Shown here piece by piece: positions 3,929 through 26,900 of a stretch of DNA of 64,000 nt (position 1 is its first letter; the number at the start of each line of letters is the position of its first letter). Source of the DNA: Dimorphilus gyrociliatus (lineage: Eukaryota > Animalia > Annelida). The notes below the pieces were generated by a model. The model had not been told where the DNA came from and made no database searches. It saw only the letters and a program-made list of their open reading frames with translations. The position numbers and the translations under genes are program-made. Location of the stretch: contig CAJFCJ010000004.1 of the NCBI GenBank assembly GCA_904063045.1, forward strand, positions 1,233,713 to 1,297,712, in the 5' to 3' direction.

Positions 3929-6073
3929 GTATAAAAGACATATTTTCTCTGCGTTCACAATTCAATTCAATATTATTTTAAAGAATGTTTCAAGAGCACA
4001 TTCATTCGGCGACATAGGATTTAGGTATTGTATAAATATATACATCAAAATTTATACACTACATATTTTATGTATTTTATTAATATTATAATGAGGTATT
4101 CTCTTGTTCTTCTAGTTTTTACTATTTAACTCTAAATATTCTAATAATTAATTATTCTATATACTCCATATAGACATACTATGTAAATATAACAAACACA
4201 AAAACATATCATCCAGTTGATACACCATTTTACGAATTGAAGGAATATTTTGTTTTCCAGTTAACTTATGTTACCTGTTTTTATTAACTTACAAAGCATG
4301 AATCTACTTAAAAAATCTTTAAATTTATATGAATTTTTTCGACGAACAAGTCTAAGGTTTTTTTAATAATTATGAATAAATAGTTTCTTTGTCTTTTTAA
4401 AAAAAAAGATTTTTGTTGTTTATATATTTGTTTTTTTTTTCCATGTTTCTGTTAAATTTTTCATTTATAAGAAACGGTTACAAATACTCATAAAAATATC
4501 AAACTGATATATTGCATATAAGTTAAGATTGCATAATCCATATTTATTAATAAAGATTACTTGTTATCTTGACAAGTGATTATTCGTTGACCGTGACTGT
4601 CATCTTAATTACGTAATAAATTGTTAAATATCCTAGTTTGTCAAGGAAATATTTTAATAAATCAAAAATTTTAATAATAACAGCTTATGATATTGATATA
4701 CAACATTAATTTAGGTATAGAAATCATTAATATACATAAAAAGAACTAATCATTCTCTATAAGAAATGGAATGAAAAAAACCAATGATAAATGAAAATTT
4801 GGCTGCTTTTGACTATCTTTTTAAGATGCCCTTAGAAAATAGTTTCTTTGTTCTGCTTAAACGAATACTTAGGGCTTTTCTCCATTTCATAATTAGCATA
4901 TTCAATTAGAGAATTACATTTTGTTTTTCCGAATATCGCAACTATAATTATAAATTAACTTAAGAACTTGGTCTATTTATAGTACATCATATTTATTCAA
5001 TATTTATAGTGAATGTTTCTATTTTCACTTTAAAATAACAACAGTATGTAATACATTCTTCATTAGAGATCTAAACACAAGAGATTTTTAACTGATTTGG
5101 GTTTTAGTCATGATCGCACGTGACTTTCTTCTCTTTATTCATCTTATTAAAAATTTAATGTTCGAATCATCTCGTCTATACTTATACCTTATTATCTCGA
5201 ACTGAAAGAGTTATATCTAAAATAGAACAACAAAAAGGCTTCTATTTTTCTCATTATATCCATTTTTCTACACTATATTAATAATCTTTTAATTTACATT
5301 GGATTCTATCTAGTTGTTTATATCGACTATAAGAATTGATATTTCAATGGAAGAATTAGAAAACTTTAGAGCTATTCTCTGTTTTCACAAAACTTTTAGC
5401 CATTTAAATTGGATGGAAGAAAATACATGAAGGAAATATTATTTATTAGGCTAATTAGCAAAGATATCTTTTTTTGCTTTGACAATTCCTAAGACGATAC
5501 TAATTGTACGCTGGAGTATAACAAATTGACTTTTATTTACGTTTTTCTAATATACTGTAGATAACATATTTAACCAATAAGAGAAATTAATGAGAAATAT
5601 TAAACCTTGGTCTCTTTTTAGAAGAAAAGTATAAATCTTCCATAAATTTTAATTAAGTGATGTCTAAATAATTTGCGCAAATTTAGAAGGTCAACTTATC
5701 TATTATTTTCCTTTGTTTCGCTATAATTAGTTTCTTTGATATTAAAACTTGTAGAAACTCTCTTATTATTTTATATTTAAAAACAATGATTTTTTAATTA
5801 TAAATCAAATAAATACAATTTTCTCTATTAGCTTCTTCTTTTAGATATTACAATAACTTGAAAAATAATCACTCAATAGTATATTTCTTTGTTCTTTGCT
5901 ATAGCAACTTCCAAGTTAACAAAGACCTCTATAAACAATTAGATTATTGTATGCTACTATTAACTGAATAGGTTATTTTATTGGTTTTTCAGCTATATGA
6001 AAGAGGCTTAGGCAATAAAAGGGCACTATATTCAATTTAAAACTACAAAAATCTTGTTTTTCTTTTGGTATTC

Positions 6074-7942
6074 ATGGAAAAATTGAGAAGACGGCACTTT
6101 CCGGATAGTGAGGTGGAGAGTGGATTTCCAGAGGATGTTCAAGATTTTATTAACCAGGCCTATATCCATAATGAAACTTCGTATCCGCAAGAAAGTCATC
6201 CATACGTTCGAAAAAGTGATTACGAAAGGGAAAGTAGGAGTGACGATAACATATCTATTGATTATACGTACGAAACCTCGCCTTATACCAGCTGTATTCA
6301 TTATACATCATACGATGATATTGACGATGATATTGTTGTTGACGAGCAATTTTCGGAAAGACATTCATTTTTAAGTGCACCAATTGATCATACAAGAGAA
6401 TTATCACCCGAAATAAGAAACAAATACAGGCAATATGAAGAGTTAAAAATTGAACTACCACCTAAAGTTTTAGCTAGACATAAACCAAATACTAAAGAAG
6501 GATGGGAAATTCCTCAGAGGAGATTAGAACGACTACGAGCGGAAAAATATGAAACGAACTTTAGAAAAAGTTTAAGAAGGGCAATTTATGGAGCCATAAC
6601 TACTAGATTAACTTTACGCACGTCTCAAATATTAAAGAACAAAGAAAATAGGAAGCAAGCACGAAACGGTATTAAAATTATTAACGCAATAACGGAAATA
6701 CCACTAAATGATTTAATGCAAAAAAGCTACACAGTATTTACAATAGTAGTAATTCTTATTAATTTTTGTGTAACTATATATGATCTAGTCAAAGATCCGA
6801 ACCCTTTAAGGTATAAAGCAGCGAATATTTTTTTCGCTTCATTGGACATCATAGTATTTGTTACTTTTCAAGTAATTTCAAGATTTTTCTCATCAAATAA
6901 AAACTGGCAAAAATATTCGCAATATGTCGAGAATATTTTAACTGAAATCCTCCTTTATATTTTGACAATATTTCTACTGTTTGGATTCATAACTGAGAAA
7001 ATGTATGAATTCTCCAGTGAAGATAAATTTAACAATTTTCAAATTGTTCTTAACATATTAGACTTTCTTAATTTACTCATCACCTACTTTCTTAGAATGT
7101 TTATTATTTACAAATTTCTAACTGGACTTATGGACGCTTTTAAAGATGATAGATGGAAATTTGCTAACTATATACTATTAAGATTTTACTTAAATGTTAT
7201 TTTTAATACATTACTCTTAATTTTTCTCTTTGCTTTCTTAGGAGGTCAAGTTGATCTTGACAATCCTTCAGAAGATGATTTGCAATACTATGGCTCATTA
7301 AAATCTGGTTTGATAATAACTACTGTAGTCTTTCTTCCTCTAGGCTCAATTATAGTATTCACTGCTGTTAATAGTTACTGGGTGTTAACTGTTTTAATTC
7401 ACTTGAATCAGCAAACAGCAGAAGATGCGTCATTTAGAGAAAACTTGGATAAAAAACTCAAAGATTATGGGGATGTCGTTAATGATGCTTTAAAGTTTAG
7501 CATGGAAAATGCCACTAAAACTCGAGAGAAATCAGAGGAGTTTGCCAAAGTTGGTATATTTCATAAAATTTTCTATTCTTTCAATGATGTAAGAATTATG
7601 GGCCTAGTTCTAATATGGGAAGTATTTGCATTATTACCTGTTATCGTCTACGCAATTGACAAAAGCGATGAGAGAACAAAGATCTTTTTTTATATATACA
7701 TATTTTTAATACTACTTGCTAATTATCATTTAATGATGGTTGCTTTGATAACTGATATTTTAATACTGGGTACAATATTATCGTTTATAATTTATCCCAT
7801 TGGAACGCTTATTTGTTTTAAGTTAAGATTTCGTAGTTATGGAATGACTGTTGACTCAAACGATGAACAATCAACACTAATTCATGAATTGAGAAATAAC
7901 GAAGATCTCGTTGCTATAAGAATGAGGAAAAGAATTGATTAA
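6074..7942 (+). CDS. Intronless multi-pass membrane protein of unrecognised family, about 622 aa, 8-9 predicted TM helices
   Basis: 1.87 kb open frame in very AT-rich DNA, first ATG at 6074. Acidic Ser/Tyr-rich N-terminus, a basic segment, then repeated hydrophobic stretches (e.g. YTVFTIVVILINFCVTIY, ILTEILLYILTIFLLFGF, IMGLVLIWEVFALLPVIVYAI). Confidence 0.85.
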   Translation: MEKLRRRHFPDSEVESGFPEDVQDFINQAYIHNETSYPQESHPYVRKSDYERESRSDDNISIDYTYETSPYTSCIHYTSYDDIDDDIVVDEQFSERHSFLSAPIDHTRELSPEIRNKYRQYEELKIELPPKVLARHKPNTKEGWEIPQRRLERLRAEKYETNFRKSLRRAIYGAITTRLTLRTSQILKNKENRKQARNGIKIINAITEIPLNDLMQKSYTVFTIVVILINFCVTIYDLVKDPNPLRYKAANIFFASLDIIVFVTFQVISRFFSSNKNWQKYSQYVENILTEILLYILTIFLLFGFITEKMYEFSSEDKFNNFQIVLNILDFLNLLITYFLRMFIIYKFLTGLMDAFKDDRWKFANYILLRFYLNVIFNTLLLIFLFAFLGGQVDLDNPSEDDLQYYGSLKSGLIITTVVFLPLGSIIVFTAVNSYWVLTVLIHLNQQTAEDASFRENLDKKLKDYGDVVNDALKFSMENATKTREKSEEFAKVGIFHKIFYSFNDVRIMGLVLIWEVFALLPVIVYAIDKSDERTKIFFYIYIFLILLANYHLMMVALITDILILGTILSFIIYPIGTLICFKLRFRSYGMTVDSNDEQSTLIHELRNNEDLVAIRMRKRID

Positions 7943-8635: not shown

Positions 8636-11600
8636 TTAAAGTAAAACACAAACTGTGCTTTTACTGCCTGAAGGAGTTTTATTGTTGGCTTGGTTCCTTA
8701 GAGCTTCTGCCATATGATTGGCTGATTCTAAGACAGCTCTTGCTGCATTATCTACTTGACCACTTTGAGCCGCCGTTACTGCTTCAGCTGCCATTTTGGC
8801 GGCTTTTACCTAATTTGAAAAATTGAAGAAATGCTATATATATTTATCGAACTTATAATAAATTAAAAGTCTTCACTTTCTTTTTTTGATTATTCCTTAT
8901 CAAAAAGAGCAAACCTCTTTGATTTTAGTTCTCACCTGGCTTGCTGTAATGACAGTTGCCCCGAAAGAATCCCCTTCGTGCACACTTTGAAGATAATCTG
9001 CCACTGCGTTAGCCATAGCACTGGCCACTAATGTGTTAGCAACTTGATCGTTTGAGATACTTGTAGAAGTTTCGCTTTTTTCTTCAACTTTGACCTCTTT
9101 CTTTGAATTTTCTTCAAGTAGACAATTAGTTTTACCAACGGCTAGTTCTTTAGCATACTTTTTAGCTGATGATGGTAATTCTTCTGTGTTAGAGTTGTCG
9201 TCCTGTAGTTTCCACTTGACATCTTTTGATACCTAGTCATATATTAATAAACGGTCATACATAGTTATTTCACTTAGAGACTTAGTAACACTTTAAAGAG
9301 TAACATACTTTTCCCTGACCAACTGTACCATTAACTAATTTTTCTTCACTCTCTTCTAACTCTTTTGTTGGCTTAGATGAAACCGACGTCTTAGGCGATA
9401 AAGTTATAGGTGTTTTTTCTCTAAATGCTTGCCAGGTTGGTAAAATAAATCCGCGTTTTGAGCAAACAGAGTTTACATAGTTCAACCAATCTGAATTTTC
9501 CCCTACAGGAAAGGGAAGAAGTATTACAGCTTCGATGTGAATATCATTTCTCCCGTCAGTTTCCACGCAAACGGAATCTCCTATCCATCTAGCAACAAGG
9601 CACTCGGCAACATCAATCGGATGGGAAGCTCCAATACCATGGGTTAATCTTGACCCAGCGGGAATGATTTTCCTTTTCACAGCTTCGCCAACGCACCATG
9701 AATGAATAAAGTGTTCTAGAGCCATGATAAATGGAGTAATTTGTATCCAAACATACTCCATGGCTGATGTAACACCGACCCCATCAGCGTTAACTCTGCA
9801 GGCGATTTCAAGAACTGAATTTTCCATTTCAAAACATATCCAAGCATCTTCTATATGTAACAATGTACCATCTTTCCAATGGTATATGTATGATGGCGTT
9901 ATGACCTCTGAAATTAGAGAAACAGCAGCCGACTTTAAATGATGAATAAAGATATTTGCAACTTGATATCTTAAGGAAATTTGAACATCCTCTTTAAAAG
10001 GCTTGTTAGTCCAATTTAGATTCTGAATGAAAAAATATAAAACACAATATGTAACCTTTTTCCCCTATAAGGTAAATTAAATATTTTATACTACAATCCT
10101 AAAGGAACTTACCGGTTTTAAATCCGCTTCAGACTTTGATATAAATACGTTATATATGTCATAAGGATTTAAATTTGGATAATTAGGAAGAATTAGTGAA
10201 TCTTTATCCGATATAGTTTTGGAAGACTTCATTATAATACCCATTTCCAGGAGAAGATTTATCATTTTTTGTATTTGACTCTCTTCTATTGTAAGATTTT
10301 GCCATAATATCGGAAATAAACTAGATCGTATTGTTCCCTTTGTTGCACTTTCTTCTAGAATTGTTGCAATTACTCTTGGTTCTGGCTTTGCAGAATTCTC
10401 AGGCCAAAATCTCTTTGCATGAATTTCAAATTGCTTACGATTGTCTTCCAAATGTAATTTACAAATGCAATTTGCAAACTCTACAATATCCAGGCAAACT
10501 TTTCTAATATCTCTTAACTGTTCAGTTAATCTCTCAAGGACATTGGGAAGTTTAGGACTAAACCATATTTTCCCCTGTTTGTTAATTAACAGATCATTAG
10601 TAATGTATATTAAAATGTGAAACTGCTTCAAATCCATTTACATTGTTTAACTATATTAAACATTTGTTAGATTTAAAGTCCCAGTTTATAAAACAAACAA
10701 AGAAAGGTTAAAGATACTATATTATCTCTTTTTAGATATATTTTACACGGTAGAGGTATAAAGACCTAATTATACATGCATTTTTAAAAATTCATAGAGA
10801 ATAATCTTTGAAGAGTAATACATGAAAGAATAATCAAAAGAAATCGTAAAATACCCTACAGATGGAGCTGTGACAAAATTAGGTACGGAACTTTTATGTT
10901 TTCTCTTTCAACTCCTTTCTTCTTTTATTTTTACTTAATTAGTTAAGATATTTCAATAAGATAGAAAGAAAAAAATCAAAGGAGTAGCTACTCACAGAAT
11001 TTTGTAAGGTTGTAGCAATGTCATCCAACTCTTTTTCATTAATTCCAAAACATTTTGCAGAATTGCTGTTAAAAATATAATTTTAATTTTTTTTTAAAAA
11101 TTAATTAGCTTTGTTCAAAATTTATCTAACCAGAATTCCACCCAATCAATTATTAATTCATTATCATTATCTCTCCTCTGCAGCAACCTCTCTAAAAGTC
11201 CATAATGCTTTATATCAAAAACGCTGTCAGATTTATATGAATTCTTGCAAAAATCCGTCAAATAATCCCGCAGCTTATCTATATCTTCACAATTTTGAAT
11301 CACAAAGACAGGTTTATGAATTCTCGGTCTATAGACCAATTTCGCCTGTAACTTGGATATCTCGTTACGAATCAAAGAGTTATCTTCACTGTCAACTTTC
11401 CTAAGGAAATTGTTAATTAAAAAAGTAATGTGTATACAGAGGAAAGAAGGAAGTAACAGCTTAAAGTTTACCTCAAATTTTCGATTTCTTTCTGTATCAA
11501 GTTGTCTCTTTTATCAAGAGTGTGCACTGTATAATGTAGTATGTCATTACAAACCATTTGTATATCGTTCGTGTTTTCAATGTTTGTCAATACTGTAATT

Positions 11601-14600
11601 ATATCACACGAAGGTACCTAATCAATAAATCAATTATGGGTAGGCCTTTATAATCTGTTTAGTTAGGAATTCTAGACAATACCTTTGAAGCGATTCGACC
11701 GATTGTTCTACTTATAAAGTGTTCAGTAGCTCGATCAGGGGTCAATACTAAAATGTATATTCCTTTTATAAAAAAATAGGAGAGGTAATGGAAACAGCTT
11801 TCTCTCTCTGTAACATCCCAAACTTCTATTGTATGTTCATTCTTGGCTGGAAAAAATAGATAGGAAAATTGATGATAAGTTGCAGTACTAGTTAATACTA
11901 TGATAAAAACAATCGTAACATTTAAATAAAAGCTAGTAGTTGCTTCATTTGAAGTAAAGAAATTTATGCGTTCTGGTTTAATGCTATTTTATGGTTAACT
12001 TCACTCAAAACACTCCTATTTACATCAAAGTTGAAAGAATCTTCAGTGACACAGAAAATATATTTATTACAAACGCTTTGACAATAATCCAAAGTTAGAT
12101 AAAACTCATAGATAATTAAAAATATCTATATCTATTTATATATAGATCATTGTGATATAAATAGTATATGCACACATGTTGATAGTATTTATCAAAGTAT
12201 ATTAAGTAACTTGAATCCGAGGAAAATCTATCGAATTCTGGAATAGCTGTGTAAAGACATCTAACAAATACCATTTAGCTGACTTTTGTTGCTATATATC
12301 CTAAGTAAACTTGATTCGATTCAGTCTACACTTCAATGAATATAATCAGGTATTGTTGTAATTGTATAATCAGCATTTTATACCTACTGTTGGAACTTAA
12401 AGCTAATTTTAAAAGATGGAATGATATATCATCCTAAAGAAATAATTGTTTCTTTTTAATATAAAATACAAGACTATAGCATGAAATGCAATATATAAAC
12501 TATTAGATTCTTTTTAATATTGAAACTAATTCATTTATACTGTTAATAAAGAATATTTAATAAGTTTTACAGATTTAAATGATGGAAAGCTAACCTGATT
12601 GTAATAGAGGCTGCCAACAATAGGAAACAAGACCGTCATTAAATTTCTTTCCATTATTGTTATTAGTAATTTTTAATAGTTTATGAATTAAATTAGTTTT
12701 CCCACTTTTTATGCAACCAATAAACGTCAATCTTGAGCAATTTAAAACTAATTTTTGGTAATATTCATTAAGTTTATATGGAAGTTGTTTCGGTAATGTT
12801 AAATAGTGTTGAGGTGGTTTTTTAATATTTTCGCATTGTCTAAAATCCAGATAGCTAAGTCTTTTAAAGGCTAAAAATGTCGGAGGTATCATTGTGATTT
12901 CTAAACAACCACAAAAATAGGCAGTCTTTAATCGTTTACAATGCAAAGCTATAGACCTTAGGCCAATATCACTAATTCTGCACTTAGAAACATTTATCAT
13001 CTCCAAATAGGTACAACCCTTTGCTAAGGCGACTATTCCAACATCAGTAACATTTTGGCAATTTTTTATATCAAGATGGCTTAACCTGGAGCTACAATTT
13101 GATGCTATAGTAGACAATGCATGATCTCCAATTTCAGTTGCTTGAAGAACTATATACCTAGAAAAAGACGGCAAAATGTAACAAAGGCAAAAAAAAGCTT
13201 CTCTCATTGGAGAACAAAGCAGAAATCAAGTGAATTACCTTATGAATTTACAAAACTGCAATAGGGTTGTTACATTAGAATCCGTTATTGAACTGTTTTC
13301 ACTTATATCTATTGATGTTAATGAGCCGCTGTAACATTCTGCTAAATATCTAATAGCATCATCATTAAATGTTCCTCCTCTTACCAAACCAAGATATCTT
13401 ATTTCTGAACCCACATTTTTAACCAAAATATTTATAACATCTTCTCCAGGTTCTAGGTATTTCCATTTAATCCACAGGGATGTCAATTTTTTACAATCTC
13501 TACCTAAAACTTTTAAGCAATACGTTGTTACTGGACAGTCACTTAATTTTAATTCGGTAAGATTAACACAATGTATAGATATAATTTCTAGTAAGGTGTC
13601 AGTAAAATTACAATCTACAGCCGTAAAGCTCATAAGAGTTTCACCGTAAGATGACATGAGATTTGATAATTCTTCATTAGTTACATCTTTGGTAATAATT
13701 AATGATGAAATATGTGCATTTTCCGATATGATAGACTGTAAAAATGGAAAATGTATAAATATATGCATATATATATATATATATATAAATATAGTGTATA
13801 CTAAAGATATAAAAGATATTGTTTATGGCAATAGCTCACAGATATTTAAGAAGAGAAACACCATATATTATTTCTAATGAATTATTTGTAAGTGTTAAAA
13901 AACATGACCTCCACCGTTTTATAAAAAATCATTTTCAATGGAAAAACGAATATTTTAATTCACCTACTAGATATTATACAACTATTCCATTATCCTAAAA
14001 TCAGGTGAAAAATTCCACAATATCATATAGCTTTGTAATATTTTTTTAAAAGAAAAACAAGCGTTTGTTTTCCTTTTGTTTTCCTTTTATAAAATAAAGA
14101 TTCTATCCTGAGTTATTCTACGTTTCTTATGCACTTAAACACAATATAATAATTAACGAGAAGAATAGTAGCTTCTTTTGTAGAAGAAAATGAAGGTTAT
14201 TTTATTATCATACTTCAATTATAATGCTTTACAAAACTCTACGAAAAAAGATAAGATTTCTTGAAAAGATCTTATGTTTCCTATAATATTTACTTTTCCA
14301 GCTTATTGTACATATGTATTCTTCTATTAAAAGGGGTATTGTACATAAGATTATAATATAAAGATTTTTCTAAGGCATTAATTGTTCCCTAAGTTAAGTA
14401 ATGTTTTCTTAATGTGTTGATTTCCAGGTGCTTTTGCTATGGAACCTAATATTTAATATCTTATTATCTAGTACACTAGATCAGGGAGACCATTCAATAT
14501 CCTTGAAATGGTTTTTGTTTATCTTCTTACCAACTGCAAATCGGTTCATTTCACTTCAGACATTCGGTCTAAGAATGAGGTCATTTTTGACTTTGTCTTA

Positions 14601-14827
14601 TGAAGCGAGGCTAAGGAAACTATAATATTAATCTAAACGTACACTCTTTTATATCGAACTTTGCACATACAAATATGTACAAGGACACATCTTTAAAAAT
14701 ATAAAATAATTAAAAAGTGATTAGTTACCTGCACATCAGTTTCTTTTGTAATTTTCACGGTTACAGACTCTGAAAATGGATAAGGAGTAGCATTGATAAC
14801 ACGTGGAAGAAGTTCATCCAATGACAT
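8636..14827 (-). CDS. Kinase-less ROCO protein: cysteine-containing (FBXL/AMN1-type) LRRs + MFHAS1-like Roc-COR + C-terminal CaaX (CVLL); 11 exons, about 1151 aa
   Basis: Exons 14827-14729, 13735-13239, 13157-12595, 11846-11683, 11617-11472, 11400-11131, 11065-10996, 10574-10113, 10022-9309, 9232-8936, 8809-8636. All introns are GT-AG and phase-consistent; total 3456 nt. LRRs such as LSHLDIKNCQNVTDVGIVALAKGC; P-loop GCIKSGKT; EVWDV at G3; COR-like WVEFC..., LWQ...LLLEMGII, HWKDG. Ends ...STVCVLL*. The exon 8 acceptor and exon 1 are the least certain. Confidence 0.85.
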
Positions 14828-16295: not shown

Positions 16296-18082
16296 TCAAG
16301 ATTCATAATACATATTCTTCATTTCTTCTTCAATAGCACTTTCTACATCTTCAGCAGGATTAGTCATCCATACCGGAAGTTTATAAACACGCATTCCATC
16401 AGTTGAAGTCAGAGCAAACAATCCTCCATTCCCAACAGCGCATGCGTAGGCGGAAGGGATGCCTTTTAATACTTGCTTTATAAAAACGCCCTTATTATCG
16501 AACATAGAAATTCTTTCATTGCCGGAATCAACTACGTAAATATTTCCAAAAATATCAACACACACGCCCCTTGGTTCCTTGATTTGGCCATCTTTATCTC
16601 CGGAACAAGCATACTTTTGAACTACTTTCCCACTTTTTTCGTCTACGACTTTTATGCAATCGTTAAATGAATCAGCTATATAGAGTAAGCCAGTTTGAGA
16701 AGAACATATGTATAAAGGATGATCGAACTCTTCCAGTTTATCTCCTCGTTTACCGCAAGAGAAAATGATCTAAAAATAAGATGAAAAAGTATTCTTTAGA
16801 AACTCTTAGTAATTTTATGTCCGCTGAAAGAGAAAGATGCTATTTAAATAAAAAGAAATTAATTGTCAATTAAAACTAATGAGTTTTTTAGAAAGAAAGA
16901 AGGATATTCATAAAGGGCAAAATCATGCACTGAAAGTCCCCAATGTGACATTCATAATAAAAGAGGTTATGTAAGAATTTTCCTCCGAGCATAATGTAGC
17001 TGTACTTTATTTCACAGACCTCCGATAACAAATAATGCCATTGTCTTAGACTGATCAATGCTAATGCAACCAAGCGGATATTTTAATAACGCATCGTTGT
17101 TACATACAATCAGAATATCTTGCCTAGTAACGAAAAATATAGAGATGGTGAATACATAAAAAAAATTTATAGAGGAATTAATAAGTAAATAAATTAACTA
17201 ATTAATTAATTAAAATCATTTATCCTCATTAGTTTGAGCTAATTCGCTGCTGTTGAAATCTTCTTCAATTAGTTTAAAGTCAAACATTAAGGAAATATTT
17301 TAACTCATCTAAACTCTTAATTACATTAATTTAACTTTAAGTTAATGAATTTCTTAAAACAAACCTGCCCGTTGATGTGGTGTACAGCCATATGATGGAG
17401 TTCTGAATCCGTTATTGCTAAACGATCATGAGATACTTGACAGATACCGTACGGTCTCATTAAAACATCCGAACCCCAAGAGGTTAAACAGCTTCCATTT
17501 TCAAGGGAAAATATCTTAATCATTTGCGAATCATCTGTGAGCGCAATATTATCTTCATTTTCGGAGCAACTTATGCAAATTGGTTTAAATTCTTCGTCGC
17601 CTATACTACTTGCTTCAATCCTGCTTTTCTTTTGTTCAAGTGCGGAGTTCATATCCATTAAAATAGTTTGATTTCTATCATGCTCAGCAACCTATTTAAG
17701 CGAACGTATTCGAATCGGGTATACTGTATGCCAGACACTAAAAAAAAGGAAATCTTACCGTTAAAATTCCATTATTTAACCAAGAGACATCAGATCTAAA
17801 AACATTATCTTGCACAGTCCATAATAGCTTACATTCATATTTTTCGTTGTTCGCCTTCTGTTCTTCTTCCTCAATCGATCTAGAATATCTCAGTTTGGCT
17901 GATAATCTCTTTTTTGATTTCACTTCACAAATATCTAAATTATCTACAAAATTGATATCAAGGTTGGATTTATTCGGTGAATTTAATATACGATTTATTA
18001 AATTCTCTTCATTTTTCTTAAGTTTATCTTGTAATTTTAAGGTATGTTTTTGTATTTTCTCTATTATGCTGGATTCCGCCAT
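16296..18082 (-). CDS. NHL-repeat (beta-propeller) protein with N-terminal coiled coil, TRIM-NHL-like C-terminal half; 3 coding exons, about 374 aa
   Basis: Exons 18082-17759, 17691-17365, 16769-16296, all phase 0. NHL repeats RPYGICQVSHDRLAITDSELHHMAVHHINGQ, FDHPLYICSSQTGLLYIADSFNDCIKVVD, KEPRGVCVDIFGNIYVVDSGNERISMFD. The start ATG is in an AAAATGG context, but the frame stays open upstream to an acceptor at 18199, so the N-terminus may be longer. Confidence 0.85.
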
Positions 18083-18675
18083 TTTATTTTTTCCTTTAAG
18101 CACTTCTATTAAAACTTCAGAGAATTTAAGAATCTCGTAATGTTTGTATACTTGTCCTAAAGTTCGTGTCAAAACTACGACATGAAGTATTTTCGTGCTC
18201 TAAGTCAATTAAAATGGAAAAGATAGATATTTAAATGTCTACTACCTAAATAAACATTCTTGTCGTTATTTATACTGTCGAATTATATGTAAAAGAAAAA
18301 TACTCGTTTGACGCAGATAAGTATAGATAATTCAGATAAGGAATATTATATAATATGGGTAATTAGCTTGTAAAATATAACATAAAGTCAAGGTTTCTTT
18401 TTTAATACGTTAATATAAAAACCTGATCTCTAATAAGAATTTACTACCAAGAAAAAATAGATATTTTATCATTTTTAATGAATACTTTACAAAATAAAAC
18501 ATTAAAAATCAGCAGGTCATATTCAAATGAAATGTTTAATAAATTTAAAGGTTATTGATAGCTTAAATTTATATAACGTATAGAGGATTGATGTTCAAAA
18601 TCAATTAAAGCCTTTGCAAAATCTGTTCTTTTTGGTAAAAAAAAATGAAAGGAGAAAAAGAGAACGTTTCCTCAC

Positions 18676-23914: not shown

Positions 23915-26900
23915 TCACCGAGTCTGTATGCGACGTAACTCTTCGTGATGTTCATCACAAAGCCATCGAACTTCTTTTCCAATATGCAATGGTTTCAATT
24001 GACCGAATCCTCCAGAGCTTATATCTATTCTTAAAAACCTAGCGATTTCAAAGCGATTGCCGGCAGGATTTTGATGAAATATTGAATCAGCTGATACGGA
24101 ATTTCCAACTTTAAAATAAAGATCTGGAAAACCGTCATTTGCATTCGCTAATACTTTTGTTAGCATTGTCACTACTCTGTCCTTGTTCTTTGTTAACCAA
24201 GCTAATGGATCTTGAATATGTAAATCAACTGAACCTAAGTATTCATACATTTTAATAAGATCAGCAATTACTGGGGCTAGTAATCGACCATTGTGACCAT
24301 GCTCGTGCACACCATTAACGATTTGAACCATTGATAAAGCCATATTGAGTAGAACTGGCAATTGATTACCTACTCGCCTTACAAAATTCTGAGATTGACA
24401 TAGACGAAAACCTGGCTCGTCTGTTAGATGCCAGTAACCTGTGTATTCGCATAGGAAATGCACTTCAAACCCTTCAAGGAACTTGATTCGGGAATGTAAG
24501 TACCATTCTTTGTTCGAAGCATTCATAGATGGAGGTAAGACAAGGACCAGCCGAGGATGTTCGTAATCAGGAAGAGCGCTTAATGAACTCGTAGTTGGAG
24601 CATGTGGAGGAGGTGTATAGTGACCAGTTAAAGCCCTCGTCCAACTACCGAGGTTATGCCACCTTGAACAAATTGATTTTCTTCGATCAGAAACCAAGCG
24701 GAGTGGAATTCTATCTGCCCTGGCTTGCCTATTCAGGACACATTTTGGACACAGGAGATAAATCTCTCGTTCCTCTATAAAACTTCTCGCATCTTGTGTT
24801 TCTCCAGTGCTTACACTAATACAACTAACAGAACAAGAAATACTACAGTCGTTAACGGAACCCTGATATATCCAATCATCGAAGGTATCCTCAACATCGT
24901 TCAAATGCAGTTGGAGAAAGCCAAGAACGGCTTTAACAACACAACAAGGTTTGGGACCTCTAGCTGTAACTTTCATTGTTTGAAGTCTTGGATCAACTTC
25001 CACATGTACCTTATGTAAAATATCGTCCTCTAGTGAGACATTTCCTGCACATTGACAATCGTCACAGCCACCAACATCGAGAGCTGTAAAGAAAACTATA
25101 TGGTGGCTGAGGAAGACTGGAGGAGGATCGAGGACCAGATCTAATAATCTCCTGCCTTCCCTACAAATTTTTAAAACAAGATCCGATAACATGCAAGGTT
25201 TAATCGCTCGGATTTCCATTTCGTAAGTAACCTGTCTCTCATCCCAATCCGGTAGATCCGGCCATACGTCAGAGTTTGGTTGACCGAATTCTAAGAGTGA
25301 CGGTATCAAGTAACGCTTTTCGCCATCAATGTCTCCTACTATAGCGCACATATCTAATTTTTCCAAAGCTCCTAAAAGCCAATGTGCGCTAGATACCCCT
25401 TCAATTCCTGCTTTATTCAATTGTCTATCTAATTCTCGATCTCTCAAGCATTCCAGCATTTCATCCAGCAGCAGAACCGAAGCATCAAGATCTGTTAGAA
25501 CCCCATGCAGGACTCGTATAAACCACAATGGATTAATGACCACCAACTTTGATAATATGGAGTCAGCAGTGAAATGAACTAGTTTTCCGCGTTCGTGAAA
25601 GTATTGTAACATAGGCTTAATGTGATTACCACCTATTTCAAAACTTCTTGCGATATTTATAACTTCATCATAGGTTATACAAGGTAGTGTGGGAGCTTTT
25701 TCAATTATAAAACCAATGTGACGAATAAACGCCAACCAATTGGGTGGTATTGATCTCTCTGGACGTTGGGTTGCTCTTACAATAGCGGCTTTCAGTTGCT
25801 CAATAGACACGTTTGATTTTTTAGCATCTTTTGGAAAGTTCTTCTTCGAATCAATCTCGTAATAACCAACTACATGCGGAAATCTTACTCTTCCCAAAGC
25901 AGGGGGTGTCTGAATCACGTGACCATTTGGTAAACTTTCTTCAAGTAGTGTCAGATCGACGAATCCGGCTCCAGGACAATTCCTTCCGGTACCTATTTAA
26001 AAATAAATTATAATTTTCATTTTATGAAACAAATAATCAATAAAATCGATCGAAATAAGATCGAAAACTCATAAAATATATAATTCTAGTGTATAGACAA
26101 TTGTTTCAACTAAGCAGAAAATTTTATAATACTATATTTATGAATTAATAATTAAAATTTTATTAGACACTGTAAAGAAATAACAATTTCTTGGGAGTAG
26201 AATTTACTAGAATTAGGCACTAACCTATTAGCAAAATGAGGTAGCTACGCTAATGAATTAATAATTATCTTTAACAATTAGCTAATTTTAACTTGGTAAA
26301 GAGATTTCTGGTTCTGACTGTCAAGATTAAAACTCTTTATCCTTATGCTCAGTTTAGCTAGTATGTATTAATAAGTATATATATATGTATAAGATAAACA
26401 ATAATCGAAATATCACATAGAATAAATCGGCATCTAAGCTCTCATAATAATATCGTCGGATAAAAGTAATTTGTCAACTAAAAGTAAAATAGGCCTAGTT
26501 TTCTGATATCTAGTACGACACATTAATATTCATAAATTTTTCTTCGTATACACAATCCCTCTCCTTATCTAGAATATATTGAACTGGTAATCATTCTTGC
26601 ATCTATTTAAGCAACGTTCTAATAATTTTTTATGGCATCCATTAAAAACCTTCACTACTATTTGGAAGTGATATATTATTAATAACATTTCACCTTGGTG
26701 ATAAGGAATATAATTACAATATTCATATTATGTATTAAATATTATTTGTTGTGTGTGCATATAAACAAAGACAAATTGTGCACTACAGAATTTCTTGAGA
26801 AGCACTAGAACGAAAAAAATCTCAAGAACTGCAAAATACAGCCATTAAAAACAACAAATTGGCGGTTTGTTATTATTCCACAAAGTAATTACAGAGGATA

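Follow-up and report, generated by a model that had tools for sequence, protein, structure and literature searches.

Among the described ROCO proteins, LRRK2 reaches membranes through prenylated Rab GTPases, and this recruitment is central to its activation (PMC6337361, PMC6891090). The group-1 protein MFHAS1 (MASL1) carries leucine-rich repeats (LRRs), Roc and COR in that order, with neither a kinase nor any other output domain (PMC6337361). The cysteine of a CaaX box is prenylated, X = Leu pairing with geranylgeranyltransferase I (GGTase-I) and X = Met with farnesyltransferase (FTase) (PMC9141697). FBXL2, whose LRRs are of the same class as those described below, is itself geranylgeranylated and ends in CVIL (PMC9141697; PMC9988375). 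Here we describe a gene that brings these elements together in the annelid Dimorphilus gyrociliatus. It lies on the minus strand, at 14827-8636, of a 64,000-nt stretch of contig CAJFCJ010000004.1 (hereafter the window, to whose positions all coordinates refer). The window is AT-rich (~29% G+C) and belongs to contig C4 of a host assembly of 77.9 Mb in 349 contigs. We consider it probable that the gene encodes a conserved, kinase-less LRR-Roc-COR scaffold of 1151 residues, with a tail whose CaaX box would be geranylgeranylated.

Each of the known systems resembles this gene in part. With MFHAS1 it shares the domain order and the absence of an output domain, and one sea-star protein of its family bears the automatic name 'MFHAS1-like'. 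However, the worm LRRs are of the Cys-containing FBXL class, unseen in solved ROCO structures, and the worm family has a conserved tail of ~150-250 residues that ends in a CaaX box. To our knowledge, MFHAS1 has no CaaX box. The family shares the Roc-COR-A-COR-B fold with LRRK1, LRRK2 and C. tepidum Roco, whereas the worm protein contains neither a kinase nor WD40, ankyrin or armadillo domains and has lost Roc motifs G2-G5. Moreover, where LRRK2 depends on prenylated partners to reach membranes, the worm family carries a putative lipid signal of its own. FBXL2 and FBXL20 have the same LRR class (E 6.7e-25) and a CaaX box ending in Leu, but the worm protein lacks an F-box and places ~800 residues (Roc-COR and tail) between its LRRs and a CaaX box that in FBXL2 directly follows the last LRR. 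Ras and Rho GTPases likewise combine a Ras-like G domain with a CaaX box preceded by Lys/Ser-rich residues; in the worm, by contrast, the G domain is degenerate, forms part of a multidomain protein of 1151 residues and is separated by ~800 residues from the predicted lipid site. An earlier note on this DNA had proposed a ROCO of novel architecture. That description stands as regards the unusual LRR class, the tail and the CaaX box within ROCO proteins, but the architecture is not unique, since a conserved family in other phyla shares it.

Gene structure and ROCO assignment

Splice sites read from the sequence give 11 exons in frame, separated by introns of 65-993 nt that are GT-AG in 10 of 10 cases. 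The spliced coding sequence is 3456 nt long (1151 codons and a TAA) and ends ...KSTVCVLL*, with CVLL and the stop at 8636-8650 of the minus strand; the exon coordinates and terminus proposed in the earlier note thus hold. As that note had also remarked, the last two exons (99 and 57 residues) are missing from the list of open reading frames (ORFs), for which the cut-off was 60 residues. A sequencing run examined for transcript support proved to be low-coverage DNA, and its three contigs fall in introns. The gene was studied through comparison, exon by exon or via its database homologues.

Through an 87%-identical fragment among the exon 9 matches, we reached a genomic contig of 5.9 kb from a close relative of the worm (L003; Logan, SRR23372229). 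It is ~78% identical to the window, and its alignment begins 8 nt upstream of exon 2 and stops precisely at base 8636, where the stop codon ends. Exons 2-11 are all in frame there, with 80-95% amino-acid identity, and the overall ratio of nonsynonymous to synonymous divergence (dN/dS) is 0.065 at dS ~1.2 (Nei-Gojobori). A genome search found no paralogues of exons 8, 9 and 11 in the host besides the locus itself. Judged by these comparisons, the locus is a single-copy, intact gene under strong purifying selection. Since L003 has no in-frame ATG beside exon 2, translation there too must start in an exon further upstream. A pseudogene reading was rejected in view of the dN/dS.

The CaaX box depends on the last two exons, and the main Dimorphilus transcript might end otherwise, by read-through of the exon 9 donor or with another 3' exon, so that the CaaX form would be minor or absent. 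The gene model was indeed built from genomic DNA alone, and read-through adds only 8 codons before a stop (...KVCYSLKCY*, stop at 9282-9284). However, this read-through end is unconserved in the relative (...KVGFI*), whereas exon 10 keeps 86% amino-acid identity with a dN/dS of 0.068 and exon 11 keeps 95% with 0.028, at dS 0.8-1.2. The GT/AG sites are kept in flanking introns of unequal length (76 vs 152 nt; 126 vs 85 nt). Both exons can also be aligned with the tail regions of distant orthologues: together they span the C-terminal 155 positions of the family profile, and exon 11 finishes on its final position. The conservation in L003 and the alignment to the profile end confirm the two exons, 9232-8936 and 8809-8636, that the earlier note had put forward for verification, and we consider it very unlikely that the main transcript ends elsewhere.

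The assignment to the ROCO group, which that note had also made, is carried by the homologues and by structure models. A Pfam scan of the individual exons returned LRR families only, without Roc, COR or kinase, and exons 8 and 9 had no match when compared by sequence with the PDB. Among eight scanned homologues, on the other hand, five passed Pfam Roc with 47-54 bits (cut-off 27), while COR-B stayed below its cut-off of 27 in three, with up to 23.9 bits. The hidden Markov model scan suggested earlier thus recovered LRR_6 and LRR_4 in the window but left Roc and COR sub-threshold on its pieces, Roc being recognised in the homologues. When the family profile was compared with the PDB, the Roc domain of LRRK2 came first (3e-18), followed by those of the C. 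tepidum and Methanosarcina Roco proteins, and these Roc domains outranked the G domains of Rab, Rho and LRRK1. The window exons are placed colinearly along this profile (Table 1), and exon 8 found homologues in phmmer at 1e-18 to 1e-28. An AlphaFold model of the Roc-COR part of the nemertean Tubulanus homologue (P0012, residues 325-985, 661 residues) reached a pLDDT (predicted local distance difference test) of 83 and a pTM (predicted template modelling score) of 0.85. In Foldseek it matched LRRK1, LRRK2 and C. tepidum Roco with E 1e-19 to 1e-15 over 600-670 columns, and it also matched an isolated COR crystal structure. For the model of window exon 9, the 18 best Foldseek matches were all ROCO COR domains (8e-6 to 1e-3), those of LRRK2, LRRK1 and C. 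tepidum Roco lying at 8e-6 to 1e-4; in this model, the exon adopts a COR-B fold. A homodimer prediction on its COR-B portion scored 0.00, a value that is informative neither way on dimerisation.

Taken with these models, the worm gene is best read as a kinase-less ROCO composed of LRRs, Roc, COR-A, COR-B and a tail. The absence of a kinase, claimed from the outset, follows from the 11 exons, which are taken up by the LRRs, Roc, COR and the tail and of which none encodes a kinase, and from the unrelated genes on both sides, a convergent 625-residue ORF downstream and a minus-strand gene upstream. Elsewhere in the host genome, at least eight loci on contigs C13, C5, C57, C61 and C63 carry both Pfam Roc and COR-B above cut-off, and five of them are clustered within 130 kb on C13 (about 944900-1074300). 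These canonical ROCO loci look like a lineage-specific expansion distinct from the gene studied here.

The LRR region comprises about 11 repeats, counted by eye, of which the last two, directly before Roc, are of the ordinary 'IP' type. In the PDB, exon 3 matched FBXL2 (6o60_C) first, then FBXL17 (E 2e-18) and FBXL5 (7e-8); among all PDB matches of the LRR exons there were only F-box, plant F-box and NLR proteins and no solved ROCO LRRs. Together with LRR_6 and LRR_4 scores above cut-off, these matches agree with the earlier reading of the repeats, which by sequence are of the Cys-containing FBXL2/FBXL17 class. Since the LRRs find their best solved match in FBXL2, itself geranylgeranylated, the gene could be taken for an FBXL2/20-like substrate receptor of an SCF (Skp1-cullin-F-box) complex, with a Roc-COR insert and, like FBXL2, a role in ubiquitin ligation at membranes. 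However, no F-box was found in any exon, in residues 1-335 of Tubulanus P0012, in the upstream ORF of the hemichordate Ptychodera or in the ORFs between exon 1 and the next upstream gene. In addition, the FBXL2 alignment covers five repeat registers, with Cys-containing repeats of ~26 residues, which points to a repeat class rather than to orthology, and the tail bears no relation to the FBXL2 C-terminus. Such a substrate receptor therefore appears extremely improbable.

The C-terminal tail and its CaaX box

In an alignment of eight proteins (A1), the Cys at position -4 is invariant, as are a Ser three residues earlier and a series of Ala and Gly positions along the helices that precede the Cys. 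All complete homologues, from Mollusca, Nemertea, Hemichordata and Echinodermata, end in C-x-[I/L/V]-x (CVIL, CTIL, CVLL, CRLL, CVIA, CQLL, CSLL, CTLL, CSVF, CAVF, CNIM, CTIM and CIIM), and the protein of the close relative ends in CAVL. The exceptions are the truncated or chimeric models P0004 and P0024. Thus, when the orthologues were checked for a conserved CaaX box, as had been suggested, every complete one kept the Cys at -4. The worm CVLL, with its Cys at -4, aliphatic a2 and accepted X, has by sequence the features of a CaaX box at a true C-terminus. No Pfam family matched the tail in the scan of exon pieces, and an ESM Atlas search with a homologue tail gave no usable match.

The terminal C-x-x-x might nevertheless be kept for another purpose, such as S-acylation only, metal binding or contact with a partner, in a protein that stays soluble. 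The a1 residue is often polar in the homologues (S, T, Q, N, R), the worm tail has just two Lys near Cys1148 and no second Cys, and lipidation is a prediction; all of this would suit such a role. Against it, the Cys stands at exactly -4 in all complete sequences of four phyla and in the close relative, a2 is always I, L or V, and X is always compatible with FTase or GGTase-I (L, M, A, F). A pattern locked in register in this way corresponds to the recognition requirement of prenyltransferases (PMC9141697), and a non-prenyl role seems to us unlikely.

Distribution of the family and state of its GTPase motifs

The exhaustive library search, for which exon 9 (238 residues) was used, returned 16 proteins, one of them the 87%-identical fragment. 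The others come from gastropods (Haliotis, Patella, Batillaria, Babylonia, Elysia, Biomphalaria), the nemertean Tubulanus, the hemichordates Saccoglossus and Glandiceps, and the sea star Acanthaster. A profile search with the alignment added five more (Littorina, Bulinus, Patiria, Asterias, Ptychodera), and a word-index search with P0012 residues 560-1180 retrieved that protein itself and Haliotis only. Apart from the sea-star protein mentioned above, the homologues are named 'uncharacterized' or 'hypothetical', and our full-text literature searches found no paper describing a prenylated ROCO or any member of this family. On these comparisons, the gene belongs to a conserved and hitherto unnamed family shared by Spiralia and Ambulacraria, so that its architecture is not peculiar to the worm. 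In Bulinus truncatus, the public model P0024, probably a chimeric annotation, has the COR region fused to MCM domains (PF00493, PF17207) and no CaaX end.

The Cys-containing LRRs are also found outside the annelid. Tubulanus P0012 has the same N-terminus, and in Ptychodera flava (GCA_041260155.1 CM083788.1; L006:9404-10342), where protein P0023 is annotated from an internal Met, the frame runs ~200 codons further upstream and encodes such LRRs, homologous to those at the Tubulanus N-terminus, on the exon that also carries the P-loop (tblastn 7.5e-43). The public model P0023 is thus truncated at its N-terminus. Since this architecture is shared by the annelid, the nemertean and the hemichordate, LRR-Roc-COR-tail-CaaX was probably ancestral to the family. 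The LRRs missing from gastropod and sea-star models may have been lost or may lie in a more distant exon.

The best-conserved portions of the family are COR-A, COR-B and the tail. The Roc domain is more variable, and its degenerate G2-G5 motifs had been overlooked in the earlier note. In the worm only G1 is intact; the switch I Thr, DxxG and TKxD are replaced (Table 1) and G5 is lost. The close relative carries the same changes, which indicates a stable state under selection rather than the decay of a dying gene. In the Patella homologue, the P-loop and DxxG were lost independently. Patella caerulea P0005 has neither the P-loop Gly/Lys pattern nor DxxG and keeps COR, tail and CaaX box; the Elysia crispata model P0008 is without the N-terminal half of Roc and likewise keeps these three parts. 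Mollusc, nemertean, hemichordate and sea-star orthologues mostly keep canonical Roc motifs, and those that do may still cycle GTP. Given its replaced motifs, the worm protein is probably a lipid-tethered scaffold or pseudo-GTPase, not a GTP-cycling switch.

Predicted mode of action and features of the locus

As we picture it, GGTase-I, assigned because X is Leu, would lipidate Cys1148, and the usual -aaX cleavage and methylation would come next. The prenyl group would tether the C-terminus to a membrane, the solenoid of LRRs would stay free for partner binding, and the Roc-COR core might act as a conformational or oligomerising module. Because the tail offers two nearby Lys only and no second Cys, endomembranes would be a possible default location of the worm protein. 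The sea-star and nemertean proteins, in which X is Met, would instead be farnesylated. We infer membrane residence, lipidation and loss of GTPase activity from sequence, and the membrane anchoring proposed earlier is to be read in the same way.

The LRRs might have a part in the lipidation itself. In FBXL2, the Cys-containing LRR solenoid docks PTAR1, the alpha subunit of GGTase-III (PDB 6O60; PMC9141697). As this structure is the best solved match of the worm LRRs, the repeats could by analogy recruit GGTase-III to lipidate the protein's own distant tail, which would make the ROCO family a second class of GGTase-III clients. However, X is Met in some lineages, some annotated models have no LRRs, and LRRs and CaaX box are ~800 residues apart; we regard this possibility as quite improbable.

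Several observations weigh against a geranylgeranylated LRR-Roc-COR scaffold. Pfam Roc and COR-B remain sub-threshold both on the window exon pieces and in a six-frame genome scan at the locus, and the divergent window Roc (exons 3-6) gives weak colinear matches to the family profile, with E ~1e-3 each. Its assignment depends on these matches together with the homology of the flanking domains, and we attribute the weak scores of the pieces to the degeneracy of the domain. The gene model is known from genomic DNA and comparison alone, and exon 1, which lies outside L003, is the sole exon that has no comparative support. The annotated gastropod and sea-star models begin at Roc, without LRRs, and a search of the 10 kb that precede the Asterias gene brought up no LRR exons. 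Finally, the X residue differs among lineages (L, M, A, F), so that the lipid type is not conserved, and the prenylation of Cys1148 is itself predicted.

If the scaffold is lipidated as proposed, a ROCO protein with its own lipid signal would be a natural contrast to LRRK2 and would allow a constitutively membrane-tethered Roc-COR to be tested. Moreover, the lineages with decayed GTPase motifs, such as this worm and Patella, in which COR, tail and CaaX box are held under tight selection, could show which Roc-COR functions need nucleotide cycling. What is new here is a ROCO subfamily that combines an unusual type of LRR with a tail of its own and an invariant, putative lipid signal; the comparison also corrects at least the public model of the Ptychodera protein.

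Table 1. Positions of the exons and motifs of the ROCO gene in the window, with their place on the family profile
Feature	Position	Strand	Family profile	Basis or remark
Exon 1 (tentative)	14729..14827	-		ATG and 33 codons, donor CAG/GTAACT, read directly
Exon 2, N-terminal Cys-containing LRRs	13239..13735	-		FBXL17 E 3.4e-9, FBXL2 E 4e-4; 87% amino-acid identity in L003, dN/dS 0.046
Exon 3, Cys-containing LRRs, two terminal 'IP'-type LRRs, linker, Roc start	12595..13157	-	23-65 (exon end)	FBXL2 6.7e-25; LRR_6 30.1 bits (cut-off 23.4); LRR_4 32 bits (cut-off 27)
Roc G1/P-loop GCIKSGKT, intact	12695..12718	-		Translation, aligned to family GxxxxGKT
Roc switch I region FNDGL, family Thr replaced by Asn	12629..12643	-		Same residues in L003
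Exon 4, Roc switch II region	11683..11846	-	86-118	89% identity in L003
Degenerate G3, DVTE vs DxxG	11806..11817	-		Identical in L003
Exon 5, Roc G4 region	11472..11617	-	138-188	Colinear profile match
Degenerate G4, TNIE vs family TKxD	11576..11587	-		Identical in L003
Exon 6, Roc end (G5 lost) and COR-A start	11131..11400	-	205-286	In-frame 3-codon indel vs L003
Exon 7, short COR-A exon	10996..11065	-		91% identity in L003; GT-AG borders
Exon 8, COR-A with the family's most conserved block FWP...PLLWQ	10113..10574	-	337-464	Family profile E 1.3e-38
Exon 9, COR-B (first ~206 residues), then disordered linker	9309..10022	-	477-698	16 library matches; model pLDDT 81
Exon 10, tail: basic VKWKL motif, acidic/Ser linker, first Ala-rich helix	8936..9232	-	711-803	Profile E 1e-8
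Exon 11, Ala-rich helices, Lys/Ser stretch, CaaX, stop	8636..8809	-	807-865	Profile E 1.4e-11
CaaX box CVLL (Cys1148)	8639..8650	-		Translation; Cys at -4 invariant in alignment A1

On either side of the gene, a Pfam scan of the neighbouring ORFs (6065-7942 and 16296-18172) gave no match at E 0.001. The convergent ORF of 625 residues downstream, a single exon at 6065-7942 on the plus strand, has many long hydrophobic stretches and probably encodes a multi-pass membrane protein. The next gene upstream is represented by three minus-strand ORFs at 16296-18172, one of which looks NHL/beta-propeller-like by eye. Further along the window, at 24001-26000, G+C rises up to 0.41 against a background of ~0.29.

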